From positions 62,001 through 126,000 of the forward strand of contig NIVC01000276.1 of NCBI GenBank assembly GCA_002269645.1: a DNA stretch of 64,000 nucleotides. Direction: 5' to 3'. The notes below the pieces were generated by a model, which saw nothing but the letters and a program-made list of their open reading frames with translations, made no database searches and had not been told where the DNA came from. Position numbers and translations under genes: made by a program. The DNA comes from Macrostomum lignano (lineage: Eukaryota). Below, piece by piece: positions 31,674 through 47,652 of the stretch (positions are counted from its first letter, which is position 1; each line of letters opens with the position of its first letter).

Positions 31674-34600
31674 GACTGTCGCACTTCTCGACTGCCTCAG
31701 CCAGGCAGCGTCTCCACCGTCTCCGGCAGCAGCAACGGCAGCGGCAGCGGGTTGGTGTCCCCCTTGCGCATGCAGCACCCCAACAAGGTGTTCGTGCCGG
31801 CCAGCCCGCCCGACCCCGCCGCCGGTCGCAGCGGCCAGTCAGAGTCCAGCTGCTCGCCAAACTCCGGGACAGAGCTGTCCGTCGGCTACCCCGGCAAGAA
31901 GTCGCGCCTCACCCTGCCGTCGGCACCGTCCGGAGTTCGAGTCCTGGCGCCTTCGTCGGCTTCGTCAAAGCTGCGGACAGTCTCGGCGCAGAAGGCGGTA
32001 CCCGCGGAGAATCCGCCGCAGCCCGCGGCCGCCGACGCCACCGCTGCTGACGCCAACTGCAGCGACGAGGACGGCGACGCTGCAGCGACCACGCCTCGCC
32101 AACGGCAGCGGCGCAACACCTTCAGCCTCGAGCCGCCGGAGCCGCCCAGCGACGCCGACTTTCACGACATCATTGTCGCTGAGGCGGCCGCGGTGGCTGC
32201 CGCGGTGGCCGAAATGGAGGGAGCCGCCGACAGCGCCGATACGGGTGCGCTGGGGGCCTGCAGGCTTTGAGACACCCCACAGACCACCCTGTAGACACCC
32301 TGCAGACTCTGAGACATACTGCAGATACTGAGACACTCTGCAGACACAAACACCATGCAGACTTTAAGACACCCTGCACACTCTAAGACACCCTGCAGAC
32401 ACCCTGCAGACTTTAAGACACCCTGCAAACTCTGAGACACCCTGCAGACACCCTGCAGACACTCAGCAGACTCTGAGACAACCTGCAGACACCGTGCAGA
32501 CACCCTGCAGACTTTGAGACACCCTGAGACACCCTGAGACACATGCAGACATCCTGCAGAACACCCTGCAGATTTTTAAGGCGCTATTTTATCATATTTT
32601 ACCATTCTCAATCTTCAGGCTACTGCCCTACAGAATCGGATGACAGGACCACTCGCACCACAGCTGACAGCTTTGAATCCACCCCAGCACCTGCGCCAGC
32701 ACCCGCGTCAGCGCCCGCGCCAGCGCCCGCGCCAGCGCCCGCGCCAGCGCCCGCGCCAGCGCCAGCACCTGCGCCAGCGCCAGCAACCTCGCTAAAAACC
32801 CCTACGGGACTGCGAAAGCCGCAGACGGTGACGCCGGTGACGCCAAAATCGACCAAAACGTCGGCGGCAGCTGTGGCGTCCCCGACTGTCACTTCGTCAC
32901 CGTCGCCGGCAGCAAGGCGGTCCAGCGGCCTTCCGCCTCCCTCGTCTGTCGGCGGGGCCAGACCGGCAGCGGTTGCTAGGCAAGCAGCAACAGCGGCAGC
33001 TTCAAAGCCACCGAATTTGAAGACGCCGACTTCGAATGCTTCAAGTTCGAATTCAAATCGGCGCGCCAGCGTGCCGGCCTCCGAAGCTGCCAGCGCCGCC
33101 AGCACCGCCGCGTCTGCCGCTGCGACTAAGAGTTCAACGACCGCGTCGTCAAGGCGACAGTCGGCCCTGCCGACTCCGTCAACTGCAACAGCGCCGACAA
33201 AGCTGAAGTCGCTGCCTCAGGCGGTCGGCAGCCAGCCAGTCAAGCGGGCGGTCCCGACGGCAGCTGCCTGTGCCTCGTCATCGCTGGCCAGACCTGGCGG
33301 TGAGCGACTTTCGACTGGATAACAAGGAAAATGGGGATTAAAAAGAGTGGGATAAACAACCCAGTGTAGCCATGAAATCGCGCTTGTTTCTTACTGAGCA
33401 TTTCAAGAGTATTTTTTAGAAGAATGAACTTTTTTAAGTTAGCTGGCTATGGTTGTTCATTGCACTCTGCGAAACTTTATCGGCGTAAAAGCAAGCCGGT
33501 GCATAGGCGGAGCCTGTCAGTCTAAAAATAGATCTAACTGGCAGGGCGTAATACAGCAAATGTGCGCATTTCCTACTGTCAGTAGGAGTTTGGCGTATTG
33601 CAGCTATATTGGTGATTGGAATTCCCAAGTAAAAAGTTTATGATGAAGTGGTCAAATTAAATGCAACAAAAAGTTTCGATTTGTCAGCGGGCCTGTAGTC
33701 TCAGTTGGTTAGAAAGTTGGATTTAAAATCCAAAGGTCGCGGGTTCGAGCCCCGCCAGGTCCACTTTTTTTCCCAATTGAAAATTCGAAAAAATCTATTT
33801 GAAGACCGTTGTTAAACTCCAAAAAATGCCCCATGCCCGCTGCAGTTCGGCCGTCAGGGGTTCCGCAGCAGTCGCGTCTGGTTGCCAAGGCAACCGGCTC
33901 CCCCGTCACGGCGGTCTCCTCAACTTCGTCAGTGGCTTCCTCGAGCCGCAGCGGCGCCGCCGGGGTCGCTAAAAAGTTGTCGAAGGTTTGTCAGAGTTGT
34001 TAAATTCTGCGTGAATATTTTTTCAGTGTGAAACTTTTGCCTTACCTTATTATGAGCTCTGGTGGTGCTGTTTTAGACTAACGGGACCTATCCTTCGATC
34101 CAGGTAGAGAGCTTCTATGTTCCCATTGTCCTCACTGTTTGCTCAAATATTTCCTTTTGATTAATATTTAAGCACGCTGCATACTACTAGTGGTAGTGGC
34201 TATCAGTAGCTAGTTCCGTGATTTCGTGAACGTAAAAATGTTTTTATAGATTCGGCGACATTTTCTTATTTGCTAATCATCAAATCCTATTGGTAATTTC
34301 AACTGATTCTGTCAAAATATTTTGTACAAACCTTTTAAAATCTCCCCTGTACACCTCTGCACACCTCTGCACACCTCTGCACACCTCTGCACACCTCTGC
34401 ACACATCTGCACACCTCTGCACACCTCTGCACACCTCTGCACACCTCTGCACACCTCTGCACAACTCCGCACACCTCTGCTGCACAACTCTGCACACCTC
34501 TGCACACCTCTGCACACCTCTGCACAACTCTGCACACCTCTGCACAACTCTGCACACCTCTGCTGCACTACTCTGCACACTTCTGCACACCTCTGCACTA

Positions 34601-37600
34601 CTCTGCTGCACAACTCTGCACACCTCTGCACATATCTGCACACCTCTGCTGCACAACTCTGCACACATCTACACAACTCTGCACACCTCTGCACTACTCT
34701 GCTGCACAACTCTGCACACCTCTGCACAACTCCGCACACCTCTGCTGCACAACTCTGCACACCTCTGCTGCACTACTCTGCACACCTCTGCACACCTCTG
34801 CACACCTACCTTGCAGACACTCAAATCCCACCTGGCATCCTCACAGAGCCCCGCCAACCCCTCTCAGGCCGCACCGTCAGCCCCGGGTCGGGCGCGGCCG
34901 CCTCCTTCGGCCGTCAGTGCCGGACGCCGCGGCTCGATCGCCAACAGTTCGAAGGCCTCGTCTGGCTGCAGCTCCCCGGCCGGCGGCTCCCAGCATCACC
35001 TGACTCAGCAGCATCACGGAGGCGTCCTGCAGCACCGGCGGCCCACCATCGTGGAGCTCGCATCGGCCAGGGCTCAGCTGGACTCCGTGCAGCAGACCGC
35101 CTGCGACCTGCAGGTGACGGTGGCGCGGTGGGACTGGGGATGGGGTGGGGCTGGAGTTGCGATGGGGGCCTGAGGATTCCGATGTGGAACCTGAGGATTC
35201 CGATTTAGAACCTGAGGATTCCGATGTGGAACCTGAGGATTCCGATTTAGAACCTGAGGATTCCGATGTGGAACCTGAGGATTCCGATGTGGAACCTGAG
35301 GATTCCGATGTGGAACCTGGGGATTCCGATGTGGAACCTGGGGATTCCGATGTGGAACCTGAGGATTCCGATGTGGAACCTGGGGATTCCGATGTGGAAC
35401 CTGGGGATTCCGATGGGGAACCTGAGGATTCCGATGTGGAACCTGGGGATTCCGATGTGGAACCTGAGGATTCCGATGTGGAACCTGGGGATTCCGATGT
35501 GGAACCTGAGGATTCCGATGTGGAACCTGAGGATTACGATGTGGAACCTGAGGATTACGATGTGGAACCTGAGGATTCCGATGGGGAACCTGAGGATTCC
35601 GATGGGGAACCTGAGGATTCCGATGTGGAACCTGAGGATTCCGATGTGGAACCTGAGGATTTCGATGTGGAACCTGAGGATTCCGATGTGGAACCTGAGG
35701 ATTCCGATGTGGAACCTGAGGATTCCGATGTGGAACCTGAGGATTCCGATGAAGATGGGCAAGGCTCTACATACAAGGCTGCAAGTTAAACGCTGTATTC
35801 TCTGGACTCTGCCGCAGGTGCTGCTGGCGGACAAGGAGGTCAGTCTGGACGCCGCCATGGCAGAGCAGCGCCGTCTCCTGCTGGCCTTCGACGCCCTGGC
35901 GGTGGTGTGCGGCCGGGCGGCCCAGCTGGACGGCTTTTCGGCTCCTCGGCTGCGCCGGGAGGCGGAGCGGCAGCGGCGGCGGGCCGAGGCGGCCGAGGCA
36001 AGCGAGGCGGAGGCGCGGAGTCGCTTCGCCGAACACCTGGCGGAGCGGGACCGCTGCCAGCGGGCTGAGCTGGCCGCTGCCAGGGAGGCGCAGATCCGGG
36101 AGGTCCGCAACACTCGCCTGATGATCGAGAAGGAGAGGGACGAGGCGCTGAGTCGGCTGGCGGAGCAGCACCGCAAACAGATGGAGGCTGTGGAGAGCAC
36201 GCACCAGGCCCAGGTGAGCTGCGGCTGTCAGCGCTGAGTAGAGGGAGACAGGTAGACAAAGAAGGGTAGGTAGAAATGGAGACAGAGAGGAAGACAGAGA
36301 GGTAGACAGAGAGGGAGACAGAGAGGGAGACAGAGGGAGACAGAGAGGGAGACAGAGAGGGAGATAGAGAGGGAGACAGAGGGAGACAGATATAGGGAGA
36401 TAGAGAGGGAGGCAGAGAGGAAGACAGAGGGAGACAGAGAGGTAGATAGAGAGGGAGACAGATAGGTAGACAGAGAGGGAGACAGAGGGAGACAGAGAGG
36501 TAGACAGAGAGGTAGACAGAGAGGGAGACAGAGAGGAAGACAGAGGGAGACAGAGAGGAAGATAGAGAGGGAGACAGAGAGGGGAACAGAGGGAGACAAG
36601 GAAGCCAGAATCGGTCAGGAAGGCAAGCGAAGGGCAGATGGGGAACAGACAGCGGCTCAGAGGCCCCACCGCACTGGCCGCCACCCGCCGCCAGCTGAGG
36701 CACCGGTCCAGCGTGGACGACGCGCACCAGACGGCCTCGGAGAAAGTCACGGACAAGCGGCTTGAACAGTGCAAACTGCAGCACCGCCTGGCCATGGAAG
36801 GTTAACTAATTATCATAATTAATGAGCCAGTTTTCTAACCGAACCGTTTGCCGCTAACTGTTTGACAGTGTGAGATTAAACTCATTAGCCATCACCTGCT
36901 GGGTAGCCCCCCTCCGGCACTGCGCTTAATGACTGACCCCCGGCCTGACCCCCCACTGCCGCCCCGCTTGCAGCTGTCGGCGGTTGCGGAGTCCCGGCAG
37001 GACGAGCTCGACGAGGAGCGACAACGGCACGATGAAGAACTGGCGGCTGCGCAGCGGCAGCTGGCAGAGCTGGAGCAAGGTGTCCGCACTGACTGACAGC
37101 TGCCTCTGGGATACTGCTTTGCCCCCCCCCCTAGCTTGCGCACATTGAATCCAAAATCTGGCTTGCTGTGGCTAACTGGACTTCTCACTCACACCTGTCT
37201 CCCTCTCTGCCTCCCTCTCTCCCTCTGTCTCCCTCTGTCTCCCTATCTCCCTCTGTCTCCCTCTCTCCCTCTGTCTCCCTCTCTCCCTCTGTCTCCCTCT
37301 CCCCCTCTGTCTCCCTCTCTCCCTCTGTCTCCCTCTCTCCCTCTTTCTCCCTCTCTCCCTCTGTCTCCCTCTCTCCCTCTTTCTCCCTCTCTCCCTCTGT
37401 CTCCCTCTCTCCATCTGTCTTTCTCTCCCTCTCTGTCTCCCTCTCTGTCTTCCTCTCTCCCTCTCTGTCTCCCTCTCTGTCTCCCTCTCTGTCTCCCTCT
37501 CTGTCTCCCTCTCTCCCTCTCTGTCTCCCTCTCTTTCTCTCTTTCTCTATCTCTCCCTCTGTCTCTCCATCTGTCTTTCTCTCCCTCTCTGGCTCCCTCT

Positions 37601-40600
37601 CTGTCTCCCTCTCTCCCTCTGTCTCCCTCTCTCCCTGTCTCCCTCTCCCCTTCTGTCTCCCTCTCCCCTTCTGTCTCCCTCTCCCCTTCTGTCTCCCTCT
37701 CCCCTTCTGTCTCCCTCTCTCCCTCTGTCTCCCTCTCTCCCTCTGTCTCCCTCTCCCCCTCTGTCTCTCTCTCTCCCTCTCTCCCTCTGTCTCCCGCTCC
37801 CCTTCTGTCTCCCTCTCTCCCTTTGTCTCCCTCTCTCCCTCTGTCTCCCTCTCTCATTCTGTCTCCCTCTCTCCCTCTCCCTCCCTCTCCCTCTGTCTCC
37901 CTCTCTCCCTCTCCCTCCCTCTCCCCTTCTGTCTCCCTCTCTCCCTCTGTCTCCCTCTCTCCCTCTGTCTCCCTCTCTCCCTGTCTCCCTCTCCCCTTCT
38001 GTCTCCCTCTCCCCTTCTGTCTCCCTCTCTCCCTCTGTCTCCCTCTCTCCCTCTGTCTCCCTCTCTCCCTCTGTCTCCCTCTCCCCTTCTGTCTCCCTCT
38101 CCCCCTCTGTCTCCCTCTCCCCCTCTGTCTCCCTCTCCCCCTCTGTCTCCCTCTCCCCCTCTGTCTCCCTCTCCCCCTCTGTCTCCCTCTCCCCCTCTGT
38201 CTCCCTTTTTCTCTCCCTCTCTGCCTTCTCTGTTTCTTGTCCTTCTCTCTGTCTCTCTGATCCTCTCAGTCCAAATCTCCCTCTCTATCTACCCCTCCCT
38301 CTCGCCTCTCGCCCGCAGATCTGCAGCGCCAACACGAGGCCAAAGTCCGCGAGCTCGGCGTTCGATTCGACGCCATGAAGTCGCACCTCACCGTAAGCTG
38401 CTGATCGATTTTCCTGCCGCATAATCGAGTTGTGGTCTCAGCTGTCTCTAATCTGTCACTAGTCTGAATCTGTCACTAATCTGAATCTGTCACTAATCTG
38501 AATCTGTCACTAATCTGAATCTGTCACTAATCTGAATCTGTCACTAATCTGAATCTGTCACTAATCTGAATCTGTCACTAATCTGAATCTGTCACTAATC
38601 TGAATCTGTCACTAATCTGAATCTGTCACTAATCTGAATCTGTCACTAATCTGAATCTGTTACTAATCTGAATCTGTCACTAATCTGAATCTGTCACTAA
38701 TCTGAATCTGTCACTAATCTGAATCTGTCACTAATCTGAATCTGTCACTAATCTGCCACTAATCTGTCACTAATCTGTCACTAATCTGTCACTAATCTGT
38801 CACTAATCTGTCACTAATATGTCACTAATCTGTCACTAATCTGCCACTAATCTGTCACTAATCTGTCATTAATCTGTCACTAATCTGCCACTAATCTGCC
38901 ACTAATCTGTCACTAATCTGTCACTAATCTGTCACTAATCTGCTTCTTTCAGAAAAAGCTGCAGGATTTGCAGGCCGCCTACGCTGAGCTCAAGATAAGG
39001 AGTGGCTTCAGCGACAGCTCAGATGCCAAGGTCTGTTTGCCATTCCCCCATCCCCACTTCCCCATCCCTACTTCCCCATCCCCACTTCCCATCCCCACTT
39101 CCCCATCGCCACTTCCCCATCCCTACTTCCCCATCCCTACTTCCCAATCCGCACTTCCCCATCCCCACTTCCCCATCCCCACTTCCCAATCCCCACTTCC
39201 CATCCCTACTTCCCCATTCCCACTTCCCATCCCCACTTCCAATCCCTACTTCCCCATCCCTACTTCCCAATCCCCACTTCCCATCCCTACTTCCCCATCC
39301 CTACTTCCCAATCCCCACTTCCCCATCCCTACTTCCCCAATCCCTACTTCCCCATCCCTACTTCCCCATCCCCACTTCCCCATCCCCACTTCCCCATTCC
39401 TACTTTCTCATCCCCACTTCCCCATCCCCACTTCCCCATCCCTACTTCCCCAATCCCTACTTCCCCATCCCTACTTCCCCATCCCCACTTCCCCATCCCC
39501 ACTTCCCCATCCCTACTTTCTCATCCCCACTTCCCCATCCCTACTTCCCTAATCCCTACTTCCCCATCCCTACTTCCCCATCCCCACTTCCCCATCCCCA
39601 CTTCCCATCCCTACTTTCTCATCCCCACTTCCCCATCCCTACTTCCCTAATCCCTACTTCCCCATCCCTACTTCCCCATCCCCACTTCCCCATCCCCACT
39701 TCCCATCCCTACTTTCTCATCCCCACTTCCCCATCCCCACTTCCCCATCCCTACTTTCCCATCCCCACTTCCCCATCCCCACTTCCCCATCCCCACTTCC
39801 CATCCCTACTTTCTCATCCCCACTTCCCCATCCCCACTTCCCCATCCCTACTTTCCCATCCCCACTTCCCCATCCCCACTTCCCCATCCCCACTTCCCCA
39901 TCCTCAATTTCCCTTCCTTAGGTCTCCAACGCCGCCACCAAGAATAAATACCGTTACCCATTTCGCCCCTTCCCTCAAATCCCCATTCGCAATCCCATTT
40001 CCCAGTCGCCAGACGGGGAGTCGCCATTCCGGCCGACTTCAACGAGCTCAGGCGAGGCGTGCGCCAGTCCGTCCTCCACCGTGTCGCACGACGATCGAGT
40101 CGTGTCGCCGGGCAACCTGCAGCTGCTGCACTCGCAGTTCGCCTCGCTGACTGAGGACAGCACAGGGCAGGTCTGAATATTTTCATTCTTCTGAAACAAA
40201 AATGTTCCATCGTTTTTACTTACAGTAATATAAAAAGCAGATTTTTAAGCAGAATTTAAGCAGAATTTTCATGCCTGACCAAACTGATCCCCAACCTGAC
40301 CAAACTGATCCCCAACCTGACCAAACTGATCCCCAACCTGACCAAACTGATCCCCAACCTGACCAAACTGATTCCAACCTGACCAAACTGATCCCCAACC
40401 TGACCAAACTGATCCCCAACCTGACCAAACTGATTCCAACCTGACCAAACTGATCCCCAACCTGACCAAACTGATTCCAACCTGACCAAACTGATCCCCA
40501 ACCTGACCAAACTGATCCCCAACCTGACCAAACTGATTCCCAACCTGACCAAACTGATTCCAACCTGACCAAACTGATCCCCAACCTGACCAAACTGATC

Positions 40601-43600
40601 CCTAACCTGACCAAACTGATCCCCAGCATGACCAAACTGATCCCCAACCTGACCAAACTGATCCCCAGCCTGACCAAACTGATCCCCAGCCTGACCAAAC
40701 TGATCCCCAACCTGACCAAACTGATCCCCAGCCTGACCAAACTGATCCCCAGCCTGACCAAACTGATCCCCAACCTAACCAAACTGATCCCCAACCTGAC
40801 CAAACTGATTCCCAAACTTATCCCAGCCTGACCAAACTGATTCCCAACCTGACCAAACTGATTCCCAGCCTGACCAAACTGATCCCCAGCCTGACCAAAC
40901 TGATCCCCAACCTGACCAAACTGATCCCCAACCTGACCAAACTGATTCCAACCTGACCAAACTGATCCCCAACCTGACCAAACTGATCCCCAACCTGACC
41001 AAACTGATTCCAACCTGACCAAACTGATCCCCAACCTGACCAAACTGATTCCAACCTGACCAAACTGATCCCCAACCTGACCAAACTGATCCCCAGCCTG
41101 ACCAAACTGATCCCCAACCTAACCAAACTGATCCCCAACCTGACCAAACTGATCCCCAACCTGACCAAACTGATCCCCAACCTGACCAAACTGATTCCCA
41201 ACCTGACCAAACTGATTCCCAACTGACCAAACTGATCCCCAACCTGACCAAACTGATCCCCAACCTGACCAAACTGATCCCCAGCCTGACCAAACTGATC
41301 CCCAGCCTGACCAAACTGATCCCCAACCTAACCAAACTGATCCCCAACCTGACCAAACTGATTCCCAAACTTATCCCAGCCTGACCAAACTGATTCCCAA
41401 CCTGACCAAACTGATTCCCAGCCTGACCAAACTGATCCCCAACCTGACCAAACTGATTCCCAACCTGACCAAACTGATCCCCAACCTAACCAAACTGATC
41501 CCCAACCTGACCAAACTGATCCCCAGCCTGACCAAACTGATCCCCTGCCTGACCAAACTGATTCCCAACCTGACCAAACTGATTCCCAACCTGACCAAAC
41601 TGATTCCCAACTGACCAAACTGATTCCCAACCTGACCAAACTGATCCCCAGCCTGACCAAACTGATTCCCAGCCTGACCAAACTGATCCCCAGCCTGACC
41701 AAACTGATCCCCAACCTGACCAAACTGATTCCCAACCTGACCAAACTGATCCCCAACCTGACCAAACTGATCCCCAGCCTGACCAAACTGATTCCCAACC
41801 TGACCAAACTGATTCCCAACCTGACCAAACTGATCCCCAACCTGACCAAACTGATTCCCAACCTGACCAAACTGATCCCCAACCTGACCAAACTGATTCC
41901 CAGCCTGACCAAACTGATCCCCAGCCTGACCAAACTGATCCCCAGCCTGACCAAACTGATTCCCAACCTGACCAAACTGATTCCCAACCTGACCAAACTG
42001 ATCCCCAGCCTGACCAAACTGATCCCCAGCCTGACCAAACTGATCCCCAGCCTGACCAAACTGATCACCGGCCTGACCAAACTGATCCCCAGCCTGACCA
42101 AACTGATCCCCAGCCTGACCAAACTGATTCCCAACCTGACCAAACTGATTCCCAACCTGACCAAACTGATTCCCAACCTGACCAAACTGATTCCCAACTG
42201 ACCAAACTGATCCCCAACCTGACCAAACTGATCCCCAGCCTGACCAAACTGATTCCCAACCTGACCAAACTGATTCCCAACCTGACCAAACTGATTCCCA
42301 ACCTGACCAAACTGATTCCCAACCTGACCAAACTGATTCCCAACTGACCAAACTGATTCCCAACCTGACCAAACTGATCCCCAACCTAACCAAACTGATC
42401 CCCAACCTGACCAAACTGATTCCCAACCTGACCAAACTGATCCCCAGCCTGACCAAACTGATCCCCAACCTAACCAAACTGATTCCCAGCCTGACCAAAC
42501 TGATCCCCAGCCTGACCAAACTGATCCCCAACCTGACCAAACTGATCCCCAGCCTGACCAAACTGATTCCCAACCTGACCAAACTGATCCCCAGCCTGAC
42601 CAAACTGATCCCCAACCTGACCAAACTGATTCCCAACTGACCAAACTGATCCCCAACCTGACCAAACTGATTCCCAAACTTATCCCAGCCTGACCAAACT
42701 GATTCCCAACCTGACCAAACTGATTCCCAGCCTGACCAAACTGATCCCCAACCTGACCAAACTGATTCCCAACCTGACCAAACTGATTCCCAGCCTGACC
42801 AAACTGATCCCCAACCTGACTAAACTGATCCCCAACCTGACCAAACTGATCCCCAGCCTGACCAAACTGATCCCCAACCTGACCAAACTGATTCCCAGCC
42901 TGACCAAACTGATCCCCAGCCTGACCAAAATGATTCCCAACCTGACCAAACTGATCCCCAACCTGACCAAACTGATTCCCAGCCTGACCAAACTGATCCC
43001 CAACCTGACCAAACTGATTCCCAACCTGACCAAACTGATTCCCAGCCTGACCAAACTGATCCCCAGCCTGACCAAACTGATTCCCAGCCTGACCAAACTG
43101 ATCCCCAGCCTGACCAAACTGATCCCCAACCTGACCAAACTGATTCCCAACCTGACCAAACTGATCCCCAGCCTGACCAAAATGATTCCCAACCTGACCA
43201 AACTGATCCCCAACCTGACCAAACTGATTCTGATCCCCAGCCTGACCAAACTGATCCCCAACCTGACCAAACTGATCCCCAACCTGACCAAACTGATTCC
43301 CAGCCTGACCAAACTGATCCCCAGCCTGACCAAACTGATCCCCAGCCTGACCAAACTGATCCCCAACCTGACCAAACTGATCCCCAGCCTGACCAAACTG
43401 ATTCCCAACCTGACCAAACTGATCCCCAACCTGACCAAACTGATCCCCAACCTGACCAAACTGATTCCCAACCTGACCAAACTGATTCCCAACCTGACCA
43501 AACTGATTCCCAGCCTGACCAAACTGATCCCCAGCCTGACCAAACTGATTCCCAACCTGACCAAACTGATTCCCAGCCTGACCAAACTGATCCCCAACCT

Positions 43601-46600
43601 GACCAAACTGATCCCCAACCTGACCAAACTGATCCCCAGCCTGACCAAACTGATCCCCAACCTGACCAAACTGATTCCCAACCTGACCAAACTGATCCCC
43701 AACCTGACCAAACTGATTCCCAACCTGACCAAACTGATTCCCAACCTGACCAAACTGATTCCCAACCTGACCAAACTGATCCCCAGCCTGACCAAACTGA
43801 TTCCCAACTGACCAAACTGATTCCCAACCTGACCAAACTGATTCCCAACCTGACCAAACTGATTCCCAACCTGACCAAACTGATTCCCAACCTGACCAAA
43901 CTGATTCCCAGCCTGACCAAACTGATCCCCAACCTGACCAAACTGATTCCCAGCCTGACCAAACTGATCCCCAGCCTGACCAAACTGATCCCCAGCCTGA
44001 CCAAACTGATCCCCAGCCTGACCAAACTGATCCCCAGCCTGACCAAACTGATCCCCAGCCTGACCAAACTGATCCCCAACCTGACCAAACTGATCCCCAA
44101 CCTAACCAAACTGATCCCCAACCTGACCAAACTGATTCCCGACCTGACCAAACTGATCCCCAGCCTGACCAAACTGATCCCCAACCTAACCAAACTGATC
44201 CCCAACCTGACCAAACTGATCCCCAACCTGACCAAACTGATCCCCAACCTGACCAAACTGATTCCCAACCTGACCAAACTGATTCCCAACTGACCAAACT
44301 GATCCCCAACCTGACCAAACTGATTCCAAACTGACCAAACTGATCCCCAACCTGACCAAACTGATCCCCAACCTGACCAAACTGATTCCCAACTGACCAA
44401 ACTGATTCCCAACCTGACCAAACTGATTCCCAACCTGACCAAACTGATTCCCAACCTGACCAAACTGATTCCCAACCTGACCAAACTGATTCCCAACCTG
44501 ACCAAACTGATCCCCAACCTAACCAAACTGATCCCCAACCTGACCAAACTGATCCCCAGCCTGACCAAACTGATTCCCAACCTGACCAAACTGATTCCCA
44601 ACCTGACCAAACTGATTCCCAACCTGACCAAACTGATTCCCAACTGACCAAACTGATTCCCAACCTGACCAAACTGATCCCAGCCTGACCAAACTGATTC
44701 CCAACCTGACCAAACTGATTCCCAACCTGACCAAACTGATTCCCAACCTGACCAAACTGATTCCCAACTGACCAAACTGATCCCCAACCTGACCAAACTG
44801 ATCCCCAGCCTGACCAAACTGATTCCCAACCTGACCAAACTGATTCCCAACCTGACCAAACTGATTCCCAACCTGACCAAACTGATTCCCAACCTGACCA
44901 AACTGATTCCCAACTGACCAAACTGATTCCCAACCTGACCAAACTGATCCCCAACCTAACCAAACTGATCCCCAACCTGACCAAACTGATTCCCAACCTG
45001 ACCAAACTGATCCCCAGCCTGACCAAACTGATCCCCAACCTAACCAAACTGATTCCCAGCCTGACCAAACTGATCCCCAGCCTGACCAAACTGATCCCCA
45101 ACCTGACCAAACTGATCCCCAGCCTGACCAAACTGATTCCCAACCTGACCAAACTGATCCCCAGCCTGACCAAACTGATTCCCAACCTGACCAAACTGAT
45201 TCCCAACCTGACCAAACTGATTCCCAACTGACCAAACTGATCCCCAACCTGACCAAACTGATTCCAACCTGACCAAACTGATCCCCAACCTGACCAAACT
45301 GATCCCCAACCTGACCAAACTGATTCCCAACTGACCAAACTGATTCCCAACCTGACCAAACTGATTCCCAACCTGACCAAACTGATTCCCAACCTGACCA
45401 AACTGATTCCCAACCTGACCAAACTGATTCCCAACCTGACCAAACTGATCCCCAACCTAACCAAACTGATCCCCAACCTGACCAAACTGATCCCCAGCCT
45501 GACCAAACTGATTCCCAACCTGACCAAACTGATTCCCAACCTGACCAAACTGATTCCCAACCTGACCAAACTGATTCCCAACTGACCAAACTGATTCCCA
45601 ACCTGACCAAACTGATCCCCAGCCTGACCAAACTGATCCCCAACCTGACCAAACTGATTCCTAACCTGACCAAACTGATCCCCAACCTGACCAAACTGAT
45701 CCCCAGCCTGACCAAACTGATCCCCAACCTGACCAAACTGATCCCCAACCTGACCAAACTGATCCCCAACCTAACCAAACTGATCCCCAACCTGACCAAA
45801 CTGATTCCCAACCTGACCAAACTGATTCCCAACTGACCAAACTGATTCCCAACCTGACCAAACTGATTCCCAACTGACCAAACTGATCCCCAACCTGACC
45901 AAACTGATTCCCAACTGACCAAACTGATCCCCAACCTGACCAAACTGATCCCCAACCTAACCAAACTGATCCCCAACCTGACCAAACTGATTCCCAACCT
46001 GACCAAACTGATCCCCAACCTGACCAAATTCATTATTATCCCCACTCCCATCCCTCCCAGTCGAGTCGCCGCCATCTGCCTGACGAGATCAGCTCGCTGA
46101 GCTCGATGCTGGAGCTCCGCAACGCCGAGCTGGCGGATTTGAGGCGCCGCCTGGCCGAATCGGACGAGGAACTGCAGGCGCTGCGGGACACGCGGGAGCG
46201 GAACGCCCTGCTGCAGCGCCGGCTGGAGAACCTGGAGGCCGTCGTCGCGCAGAAGACCGAAAATGAGAAGTGAGGATGGGGAATGGGGTGTTAGGATGGG
46301 GAAGGGGGGTAGGATGGGGAAGGGAGGGTAGGATGGGGAAGGGAGGGTAGGATGGGGAAGGGGGGTAGGATGGGGAAGGGAGGGTAGGATGGGGAAGGGA
46401 GGGTAGGATGGGGAAGGGGGGTAGGATGGGGAAGGGAGGGTAGGATGGGGAAGGGAGGGTAGGATGGGGAAGGGGGTAGGATGGGGAAGGGAGGGTAGGA
46501 TGGGGAAGGGAGGGTAGGATGGGGAAGGGGGGTAGGATGGGGAAGGGAGGGTAGGATGGGGAAGGGAGGGTAGGATGGGGAAGGGAGGGTAGGATGGGGA

Positions 46601-47652
46601 AGGGAGGGTAGGATGGGAAGTCTCTCGAGGGTGGTGAAGATGCAGATAGTGGGGAAGGTCTGGGAGAGGGTGGTGGAGGTCTGGGAGAGGGTGGTGGAGG
46701 TCTGGGAGAGGGTGGTGGAGGTCTGGGAGAGGGTGGTGGAGGTCTGGGAGAGGGTGGTGGAGGTCTGGGAGAGGGTGGGGAAGGCGTGGGAGAGGGTGGG
46801 GGAGTTCTGGGAGAGGGTGGGGAAGGTCTGGGAGAGGGTGGGGAAGGTCTGGGCGAGGGTGGGGAAGGCGTGGAAGAGGGTGGGGGAGTTCTGTTAGAGG
46901 GTGGGGAAGACCTGGGAGAGGATGGGGAAGGTCTGAGAGGGTCTGGAATCAGATAAGAGAAGTCCGGGTAGGCTTAGTGCATGGCGGAAGAGGCCATCAC
47001 GTCTGCCAGCAGTTGAGCAACCCGACTCTGCCGCTCGCAGGAGCCTGCACGATCGCTACCAGCAGCTGGTGAAGCGGCTGGACCAGGAGAACAAGGCCAA
47101 AAGCAAGATCAGCATGAATTATGACGAGTTGAAGTTCAAACTTGAGTCCATCGAGCGGGCCCAGAGCATGGCGGACTTGTGAGCACTTATTAACCATTGA
47201 AGCATATCATTGTGAAATTGGTTAGTTGGGTCCAGTTGACTGCCTCCTTCAACCGATGCTGGCTGATTGGATTCCCCAATATTTTACCACCCGTTTCCAA
47301 ATTTAGAAGCTTGTCGGTGACTTCTCCGCGAGGCTTCTCAACCTTGGGCGGCGGGCCGGCCTTCTCCGGGCCCGAGGGCCGCGGCGGCGGCAGCAGCGGG
47401 GCGGAAGACAGCGACTCCGCTGCCGGCTCCTCGCTGATGTCGCGTTCGATGTACGTGCCAAGCAGCGGCGGCACCAGCGGCGGCGGCGGTGGCAGCGGTA
47501 GCGCAGCTCGTCGCCGCGGCCTGCAGCACGACCGGAACAAGCGGCGCACCATTTCAACGGCTGGCGACGGCGGGGCGCGCGATTCCGCGGTGGTGGCCGC
47601 GGCTGCTGCGGCCTTCTCGGCGGCGCTGATGGACGGCGACGATAACGAATAG
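31674..47652 (+). CDS. MTUS1/MTUS2 (ATIP3/TIP150)/CCDC69-like coiled-coil protein, ~1066 aa, 5' end not found
   Basis: Exons 31674-32244, 32619-33299, 33846-33985, 34817-35113, 35818-36213, [36695-36800 or 36974-37079], 38319-38392, 38953-39030, 40006-40170 (alternative acceptor 39922), 46061-46269, 47041-47178, 47307-47652 total 3201 nt in phase. A long S/P/A-rich disordered N-half is followed by coiled coil containing AFDALAVV, LPDEISSLSSMLELRN and LDQENKAKSKISMNYDELKFKL, recalled as resembling MTUS GFEALxVV, ESLKxVLExKN and ESKVNKRLSMENEELLWKL. Confidence 0.75.
32268..32575. repeat. Degenerate GACACCCTGCA repeat, MTUS-like intron
   Basis: Recurrent ACACCCTGCAGA / CTCTGAGACA words. Confidence 0.8.
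33689..33763 (+). tRNA. Intronic tRNA-like gene or pseudogene: class I body, anticodon TAA
   Basis: Acceptor stem GGGCCTG/CAGGTCC plus A73; D region GTCTCAGTTGGTTAGAAA (imperfect, one extra nt); anticodon stem TTGGA/TCCAA with loop TTTAAAA; variable region AGGTC; T arm GCGGG-TTCGAGC-CCCGC; T7 run at 33765-33771. Confidence 0.75.
33765..33771 (+). terminator. Pol III oligo-T terminator candidate
   Basis: TTTTTTT two nt after the discriminator base of the tRNA-like gene. Confidence 0.6.
34350..34805. repeat. 10-bp CTGCACACCT repeat, MTUS-like intron
   Basis: Direct reading. Confidence 0.92.
35170..35750. repeat. 21-bp minisatellite, MTUS-like intron
   Basis: Unit GAACCTGAGGATTCCGATGTG, between donor 35114 and acceptor 35817. 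Confidence 0.95.
36240..36600. repeat. Purine-rich (GAGAGGGAGACA)-type tract
   Basis: Intron upstream of exon 36695. Confidence 0.9.
37195..38235. repeat. Pyrimidine-rich (TGTCTCCCTCTC)-type tract
   Basis: Intron downstream of exon 37079; reverse complement of the 36240-36600 tract. Confidence 0.92.
38452..38942. repeat. 17-bp array changing to an 11-bp array
   Basis: CTAATCTGAATCTGTCA units, then CTAATCTGTCA units, up to the acceptor at 38952. Confidence 0.95.
39040..39905. repeat. 13/14-bp C-rich minisatellite
   Basis: Unit CTTCCCCATCCC(C/T)A. Confidence 0.92.
40275..46027. repeat. 5.75-kb 20/21-bp minisatellite filling one MTUS-like intron
   Basis: Unit CCTGACCAAACTGAT(C/T)CCCA(A/G), between donor 40171 and acceptor 46060. 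Confidence 0.97.
46272..46930. repeat. G-rich 19-bp array followed by a 21-bp array
   Basis: GGATGGGGAAGGGAGGGTA units to ~46615, then GGTCTGGGAGAGGGTGG(T/G)G(G/A)A units. Confidence 0.93.

Follow-up and report, generated by a model that had tools for sequence, protein, structure and literature searches.

A candidate pair of mutually exclusive, non-homologous 106-nt exons in a Macrostomum lignano gene for a coiled-coil protein

Exon structure and reading frames of the locus

The window analysed here is a stretch of 64,000 nt from the flatworm Macrostomum lignano (assembly GCA_002269645.1, contig NIVC01000276.1, positions 62,001 to 126,000 of the forward strand; coordinates below are those of the window), and the locus under study is a coiled-coil protein gene. 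Two neighbouring candidate exons in the 3' part of its model, F and G, are separated by an intron of 173 nt and had been singled out by a first-pass annotation, made from the sequence alone, as a possible mutually exclusive pair. Direct reading and recomputation bore out what that annotation had said about their geometry: both are exactly 106 nt, begin in phase 0 and end in phase 1, and either one links the upstream exon E to the downstream exon H in an open frame. Splicing of F to G was likewise confirmed to run into a TGA, which we place in G, and skipping of both exons shifts the frame into another TGA further downstream (Table 1). Both premature stops lie 5' of later exon junctions, the arrangement found in frame-enforced pairs of the FGFR2 IIIb/IIIc type. 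As each exon is 1 mod 3 in length, full-length protein can be made only if exactly one of them is included.

We extended the model to the stop codon of the gene through exons I to M. The path D-E-F-H-I-J-K-L-M and the path D-E-G-H-I-J-K-L-M each come to 1761 nt and remain open to the end with no frame correction, indicating that the assembly is locally clean.

Table 1. Exons, stop codons, signals and repeat arrays of the coiled-coil protein gene (a slash marks an exon boundary; intron letters in lower case).
Feature	Position	Strand	Details
Exon D	34862-35113	+	3' part of gene model
Exon E	35818-36213	+	396 nt, phase 0 to 0; coiled-coil region; donor CAG/gtgagc
Upstream tandem array	36246-36609	+	(GGAGACAGAGAG)n, in E-F intron; upstream arm of inverted satellite pair; Tandem Repeats Finder (TRF)
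Candidate exon F	36695-36800	+	106 nt, phase 0 to 1; LRHRSSVDDAHQTASEKVTDKRLEQCKLQHRLAME+G; gccgccag/CTGAGG...ATGGAAG/gttaac
In-frame TAA on read-through of F	36803-36805	+	...LAMEG, then stop; GGT TAA, two bases past the donor; read from the sequence
ATTAAA hexamer	36875-36880	+	possible, weak poly(A) signal; in AT-rich first half of F-G intron
CTGAC branch-point-like motifs (two)	36933-36937, 36945-36949	+	37 and 25 nt 5' of the G acceptor
Exon G	36974-37079	+	106 nt, phase 0 to 1; LSAVAESRQDELDEERQRHDEELAAAQRQLAELEQ+G; gcttgcag/CTGTCG...GAGCAAG/gtgtcc
TGA on inclusion of F and G	37033-37035	+	six exon junctions 3' of the stop
Downstream tandem array	37195-38206	+	(CTGTCTCCCTCTCTCCCT)n, in G-H intron; reverse complement of upstream array; TRF
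Exon H	38319-38392	+	74 nt, phase 1 to 0; (D)LQRQHEAKVRELGVRFDAMKSHLT; donor ACC/gtaagc; present in UniProt model A0A1I8FDR9, homologous to DSEQRHEVKL of A0A1I8GIK3
TGA on skipping F and G (E to H)	38376-38378	+	five exon junctions 3' of the stop
Exon I	38953-39030	+	extension toward the stop codon of the gene
Exon J	40006-40170	+	extension toward the stop codon of the gene
Exon K	46061-46269	+	extension toward the stop codon of the gene
Exon L	47041-47178	+	extension toward the stop codon of the gene
Exon M	47307-47649	+	last exon, then TAG

Coding character and ancestry of F and G

To score coding character we used codon log-odds trained on the eight secure exons of the gene (D, E and H to M) against their own off-frames. 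F scored +29.6 bits in the proposed frame, against -30.9 and -34.0 bits in the other two, and G scored +21.4 bits, against -5.8 and -57.4. Per codon these values are 0.84 for F and 0.61 for G, where the secure exons, scored by leave-one-out, span +0.08 to +1.27 (exon E, +0.74 bits). In a null made of the non-repetitive 105-nt segments of the window's + strand, real exons included, 1.1% scored at least as high as F and 2.6% at least as high as G. GC content at the first, second and third codon positions (GC1/GC2/GC3) was 0.69/0.37/0.86 for F, 0.94/0.34/0.74 for G and 0.82/0.48/0.89 for E, a periodicity like that of the secure exons. Read in the frame of F, codon log-odds rise above zero at about 36671-36700, close to where the acceptor is proposed, and are still positive in the 3' half of the exon. 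F and G thus both look coding when read in continuation of the frame of E.

An exhaustive HMMER search with exon E recovered four proteins, all of them UniProt models of M. lignano (P0001, which is A0A1I8FDR9; P0002, which is A0A1I8JQF9; P0003, which is A0A1I8GIK3; and P0004, which is A0A1I8FKA1) and none from any other species, and a profile of exons K and L added a fifth M. lignano model, the fragment P0005, which is 100% identical over exon K. Homologous-protein searches with E+F+G+H among 8000 low-complexity candidates and with F+H+I+J among 26 candidates found none, no encoding contig is on record for A0A1I8FDR9 or P0005, and the gene product had no significant match in Pfam or PDB. Pfam scans of A0A1I8FDR9, A0A1I8GIK3 and P0005 gave no support to the automatic UniProt names (kinesin motor, PHD-type, protein kinase, GOLGA2L5, HAP1 N-terminal). 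The C-terminal motifs may recall microtubule-associated coiled-coil proteins of the MTUS1/2 type, a family to which we do not assign the gene.

Three of the models, A0A1I8FDR9, P0002 and P0004, represent this gene or copies nearly identical to it; M. lignano is a hidden polyploid that has undergone a recent whole-genome duplication (PMC10468722). The junction of D with exon E is seen in P0002 (TACDLQ/VLLADKEV). The frame switches in all three, and the translation by A0A1I8FDR9 of a 21-mer array that is intronic (35169-35751), mark these models as ab initio products of an error-rich assembly and not as evidence from transcripts. A0A1I8FDR9 reads ...AHQTASEKVTDKRLEQCKLQHRLAME/DLQRQHEAKV..., such that the last 26 aa of F are joined directly to H (...QHRLAME/DLQRQHEAKV...) and G is omitted. 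Amino-acid substitutions elsewhere relative to the window indicate that this model derives from another gene copy, in which the frame-preserving join of F to H implies a phase-1 end of F as well.

A0A1I8GIK3 is a paralogue (38% identity) of like architecture, with a well-conserved C-terminal part (52% identity over K+L). G aligns without gaps to its segment LSALAQQHQTTLDQQQALHSQELQSIAEQNSKAMH, the 35 residues just before the H-like DSEQRHEVKL, with a BLOSUM62 score of 52 and 11 of 35 residues identical (z=5.0 against composition-preserving shuffles, none of 20000 of which scored as high). This placement is the best of all along the paralogue, the second best scoring 31. F scored 5 at the equivalent place (z=1.5) and at most 20 anywhere along the protein. 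The gap-free alignment crosses the E/G boundary (...EAVESTHQAQ/LSAVAES... versus ...ESVRTAHAEQ/LSALAQQ...), and from the end of E through H, 24 of 80 residues are identical. The comparison identifies G as the ancestral exon and E-G-H as the ancestral, conserved path. F is an additional single-copy segment of exon-grade coding character that lies upstream of G across the 173 nt. Each single-exon path has some outside support, since A0A1I8FDR9 joins F to H and A0A1I8GIK3 has E, G and H in succession. For the annotation of M. lignano, the conserved path to follow is E-G-H; the models A0A1I8FDR9, A0A1I8JQF9, A0A1I8GIK3, A0A1I8FKA1 and P0005 are fragmentary, and the set is also marked by broken frames (those of this gene hop between frames) and misleading names.

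F and G do not resemble each other. Their DNA is identical at 31 of 106 positions, where shuffles gave 30.2+-4.6, and the Smith-Waterman score of their translations was 21, where shuffles gave 24.3+-4.6 and 79% scored equal or higher. An origin of the pair by exon duplication is rejected on this shuffle-level similarity in both DNA and protein. The last 20 aa of F (EKVTDKRLEQCKLQHRLAME, ~36740-36799) and a late segment of exon E (EKERDEALSRLAEQHRKQME, ~36127-36186) share 9 of 20 residues, which is not significant (z=1.6); that F derives from a partial copy of E is possible but unproven.

The protein-level claims of the first-pass annotation stood in part. It had described a swap of a basic for an acidic segment; G is indeed acidic (net -7), but F is near neutral (net +1, with 3 His). 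It had also described the two as coiled-coil segments of equal register, and 35 aa do make five heptads by arithmetic, but a crude heptad scan found F poorly patterned, with a clear pattern confined to the second half of G. Finally, the geometry, phases and stops of the pair agree with what it had called the classic signature of mutually exclusive exons, although the word "classic" does not apply, since F and G are non-homologous.

Proposed either-or splicing and its alternatives

The donors of F and G are both weak, matching the consensus at 6/9 positions with no G at +5, and that of E (GTGAGC) matches at 8/9; weak donors fit the pattern typical of regulated exons. The F acceptor has a C-rich tract, the GT of the F donor stands at the sole position that matches the phase of H, and the G acceptor (ccgccccgcttgcag/) is strong. 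We considered three ways in which double inclusion might be prevented physically. Steric hindrance of the type described for alpha-tropomyosin exons 2 and 3 does not agree with an intron of 173 nt whose CTGAC motifs lie close to the G acceptor, over 130 nt away from the F donor. Incompatibility of U2 and U12 sites is likewise rejected, as the donors are gttaac and gtgtcc, the acceptors are cag and no U12 consensus (/ATATCC or /GTATCC) is present. Docking/selector pairing of the Dscam type was sought with RNAduplex among the unique pieces of the introns, where z ranged from 0 to -1.6 against shuffles; strong pairing was confined to the satellite arrays on either side of the two exons. The reading frame, presumably together with nonsense-mediated decay (NMD), is the one visible feature that could enforce exclusivity.

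We tentatively favour the interpretation that F and G are non-homologous exons kept mutually exclusive by the reading frame. By default E-G-H would be made, and the alternative E-F-H would replace an acidic, well-heptad-patterned stretch of 35 aa with a near-neutral, His-rich and less regular one; products with both exons or neither would end at premature stops and presumably be cleared by NMD. What the sequence shows is the geometry, the coding signal of both segments and the ancestry of G; the use of F as a spliced exon, its junction with H and the clearance of the remaining products by NMD are steps we infer.

Several observations weigh against this interpretation. The F-G intron looks spliceable, which leaves the frame as the sole bar to double inclusion. 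The boundaries of F were chosen among several in-frame acceptors, and 232 in-frame AG/GT combinations exist in 36560-37200. F has no counterpart in the A0A1I8GIK3 model, where the homologues of the end of E and the start of G abut and leave no room for it; the dissimilarity of F and G and the poor heptad pattern of F count on the same side. The F-H join in A0A1I8FDR9 is the choice of an ab initio-style predictor and not evidence of expression. Joint use of parts of F and G in one frame is formally open to 92 donor/acceptor pairs. Just one of them combines canonical sites with the unchanged G acceptor and a substantial share of F, namely a 51-nt F (donor AAA/gtcacg) followed by G; the coding-like 3' half of F makes it less likely, which counts in favour of the pair.

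A close known counterpart of such a pair is FGFR2, whose exons IIIb and IIIc (148 and 145 nt) are mutually exclusive by frame and NMD. Like F and G, they are adjacent internal exons, each 1 mod 3, of which single inclusion alone is productive, and they supply alternative versions of one protein stretch. Unlike F and G, they are homologous duplicates with tissue-specific regulators and transcript proof; F and G are candidates unrelated in sequence, one of them ancestral and one apparently new. Non-homologous pairs are beyond the reach of the WebScipio method (Pillmann et al. 2011), which predicts tandem-duplicated exons from length, splice-site type and phase, and similarity (criteria A, B and C; PMC3228551). 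F and G share with WebScipio clusters (myosin heavy chain, Dscam and others) the neighbouring position, equal length, splice-site type and phase of criteria A and B, and lack the similarity of criterion C.

It is unlikely, but consistent with part of the evidence, that F is a real exon that truncates the protein, either as a poison cassette in an E-F-G-H transcript, which would stop at the TGA at 37033 and be degraded by NMD or yield a short protein, or as an alternative 3'-terminal exon, in which the F donor would go unused, translation would stop at the TAA and polyadenylation would occur in AT-rich sequence. In both versions the protein would lack the conserved C-terminal part. Poison cassettes and terminal exons formed by intronic polyadenylation resemble F in being extra exons 5' of a conserved one, with a premature stop and a stop after a weak donor, and here the in-frame stop follows the 6/9 donor immediately. 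The first 100 nt past F are AT-rich, unlike the GC-rich surroundings, and contain the ATTAAA, 70 nt beyond the TAA; because the F-G intron looks normally spliceable, F+G would be expected wherever F is recognised; and the absence of F from the paralogue would be in keeping with such an exon. A single ATTAAA in AT-rich DNA is, however, fairly common by chance. Codon bias, which a poison exon would not require, extends over the whole of F, and truncation accounts neither for the phase with which F fits H, and which would permit a productive join, nor for its length equal to that of G.

We consider it doubtful that F is no exon at all. On this view the gene would consist of E-G-H alone, and F would be unique intron sequence, GC3-rich and open by chance, which an ab initio predictor picked as well. 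The abutting homologues in the paralogue suit this explanation, as do the many in-frame AG/GT combinations, the lack of a clear branch-point motif 5' of F and the poor heptad pattern; moreover, stops are scarce in the GC-rich DNA here, and around F several frames lack them. The codon score of F is nevertheless strongly positive in one frame and strongly negative in the others, at a level that few segments of the window match, the positive values set in close to the proposed acceptor, and the donor stands at the one position that fits H.

The remaining explanation, which we regard as quite improbable, is that F and G are both constitutive and that the frame is broken by a one-base assembly error or by a real frameshift in this copy. 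The first-pass annotation had itself offered a spurious G at 36800 as an alternative, and removal of one base from the 3' end of F does open E-F-G-H; older M. lignano assemblies are rich in indel errors, judging by the frame-hopping UniProt models, and recently duplicated gene copies in this species could decay (PMC10468722). The clean frames speak against it, with 1761 nt and nine junctions passed without correction, as do the in-frame F-H join in the model of another copy, which needs a phase-1 end of F, and the paralogue, in which E and G are contiguous with no F-like segment between them. Furthermore, GG makes no long homopolymer run, and AAG/gt is a better donor context than GAA/gt.

Should transcripts confirm the mutually exclusive use of F and G, this gene would document, in a flatworm used as a model of regeneration, an either-or choice between exons unrelated to each other, in which a new exon is put on trial without loss of the old one and the reading frame is the sole safeguard.

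Satellite arrays and other elements around the exons

The block that holds F and G is bracketed by two satellite arrays in inverted orientation. The 12-mer GGAGACAGAGAG has 16 exact copies in the window, nine on the + strand (36278-36581) and seven on the - strand (37429-37608), and none elsewhere. The inverted arms span 362 nt at ~70% complementarity, and RNAduplex paired 36278-36598 with 37195-37600 at -510.6 kcal/mol (z=-17), so that a duplex of ~320 nt is possible. The modelled pairing suggests that the arrays would loop out F and G jointly, which would favour skipping or back-splicing of the block and not a choice between the two exons. Circular-RNA loci flanked by inverted Alu elements also have exons bracketed by inverted repeats. 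The F+G block is like them in its reverse-complementary arms, with the predicted duplex of ~320 nt, and unlike them in that its arms belong to satellite arrays, not to dispersed elements.

A more elaborate scenario would combine these features: F, new and non-homologous, would have been recruited as the mutually exclusive partner of the ancestral G, with the frame alone enforcing the choice, the five-heptad geometry of the coiled coil setting the size of the exon, and the satellite duplex of ~320 nt regulating the loop-enclosed block through skipping or through back-splicing to a 212-nt circular RNA. As a whole we hold this combination to be very unlikely.

Tandem repeats are abundant elsewhere in the locus. 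The D-E intron carries, at 35169-35751, the 21-mer array mentioned above (CCTGAGGATTCCGATGTGGAA, 27.8 copies, 95% matches), which has two open frames (EDSDVEP... and NLRIPMW...) and is translated in A0A1I8FDR9; A0A1I8JQF9 splices D straight to E. The J-K intron (40229-46050) is filled by an array of ~6 kb, which translates as PDQTDPQ... and LTKLIPN.... Over the window, 11-mers with at least three occurrences cover 54% of the sequence, mostly in intronic tandem arrays, and the exons are GC-rich. An upstream intron of the coiled-coil gene contains a tRNA-Leu gene (anticodon TAA) at 33689-33764 on the + strand, identified by ARAGORN and by Rfam RF00005 (58 bits).

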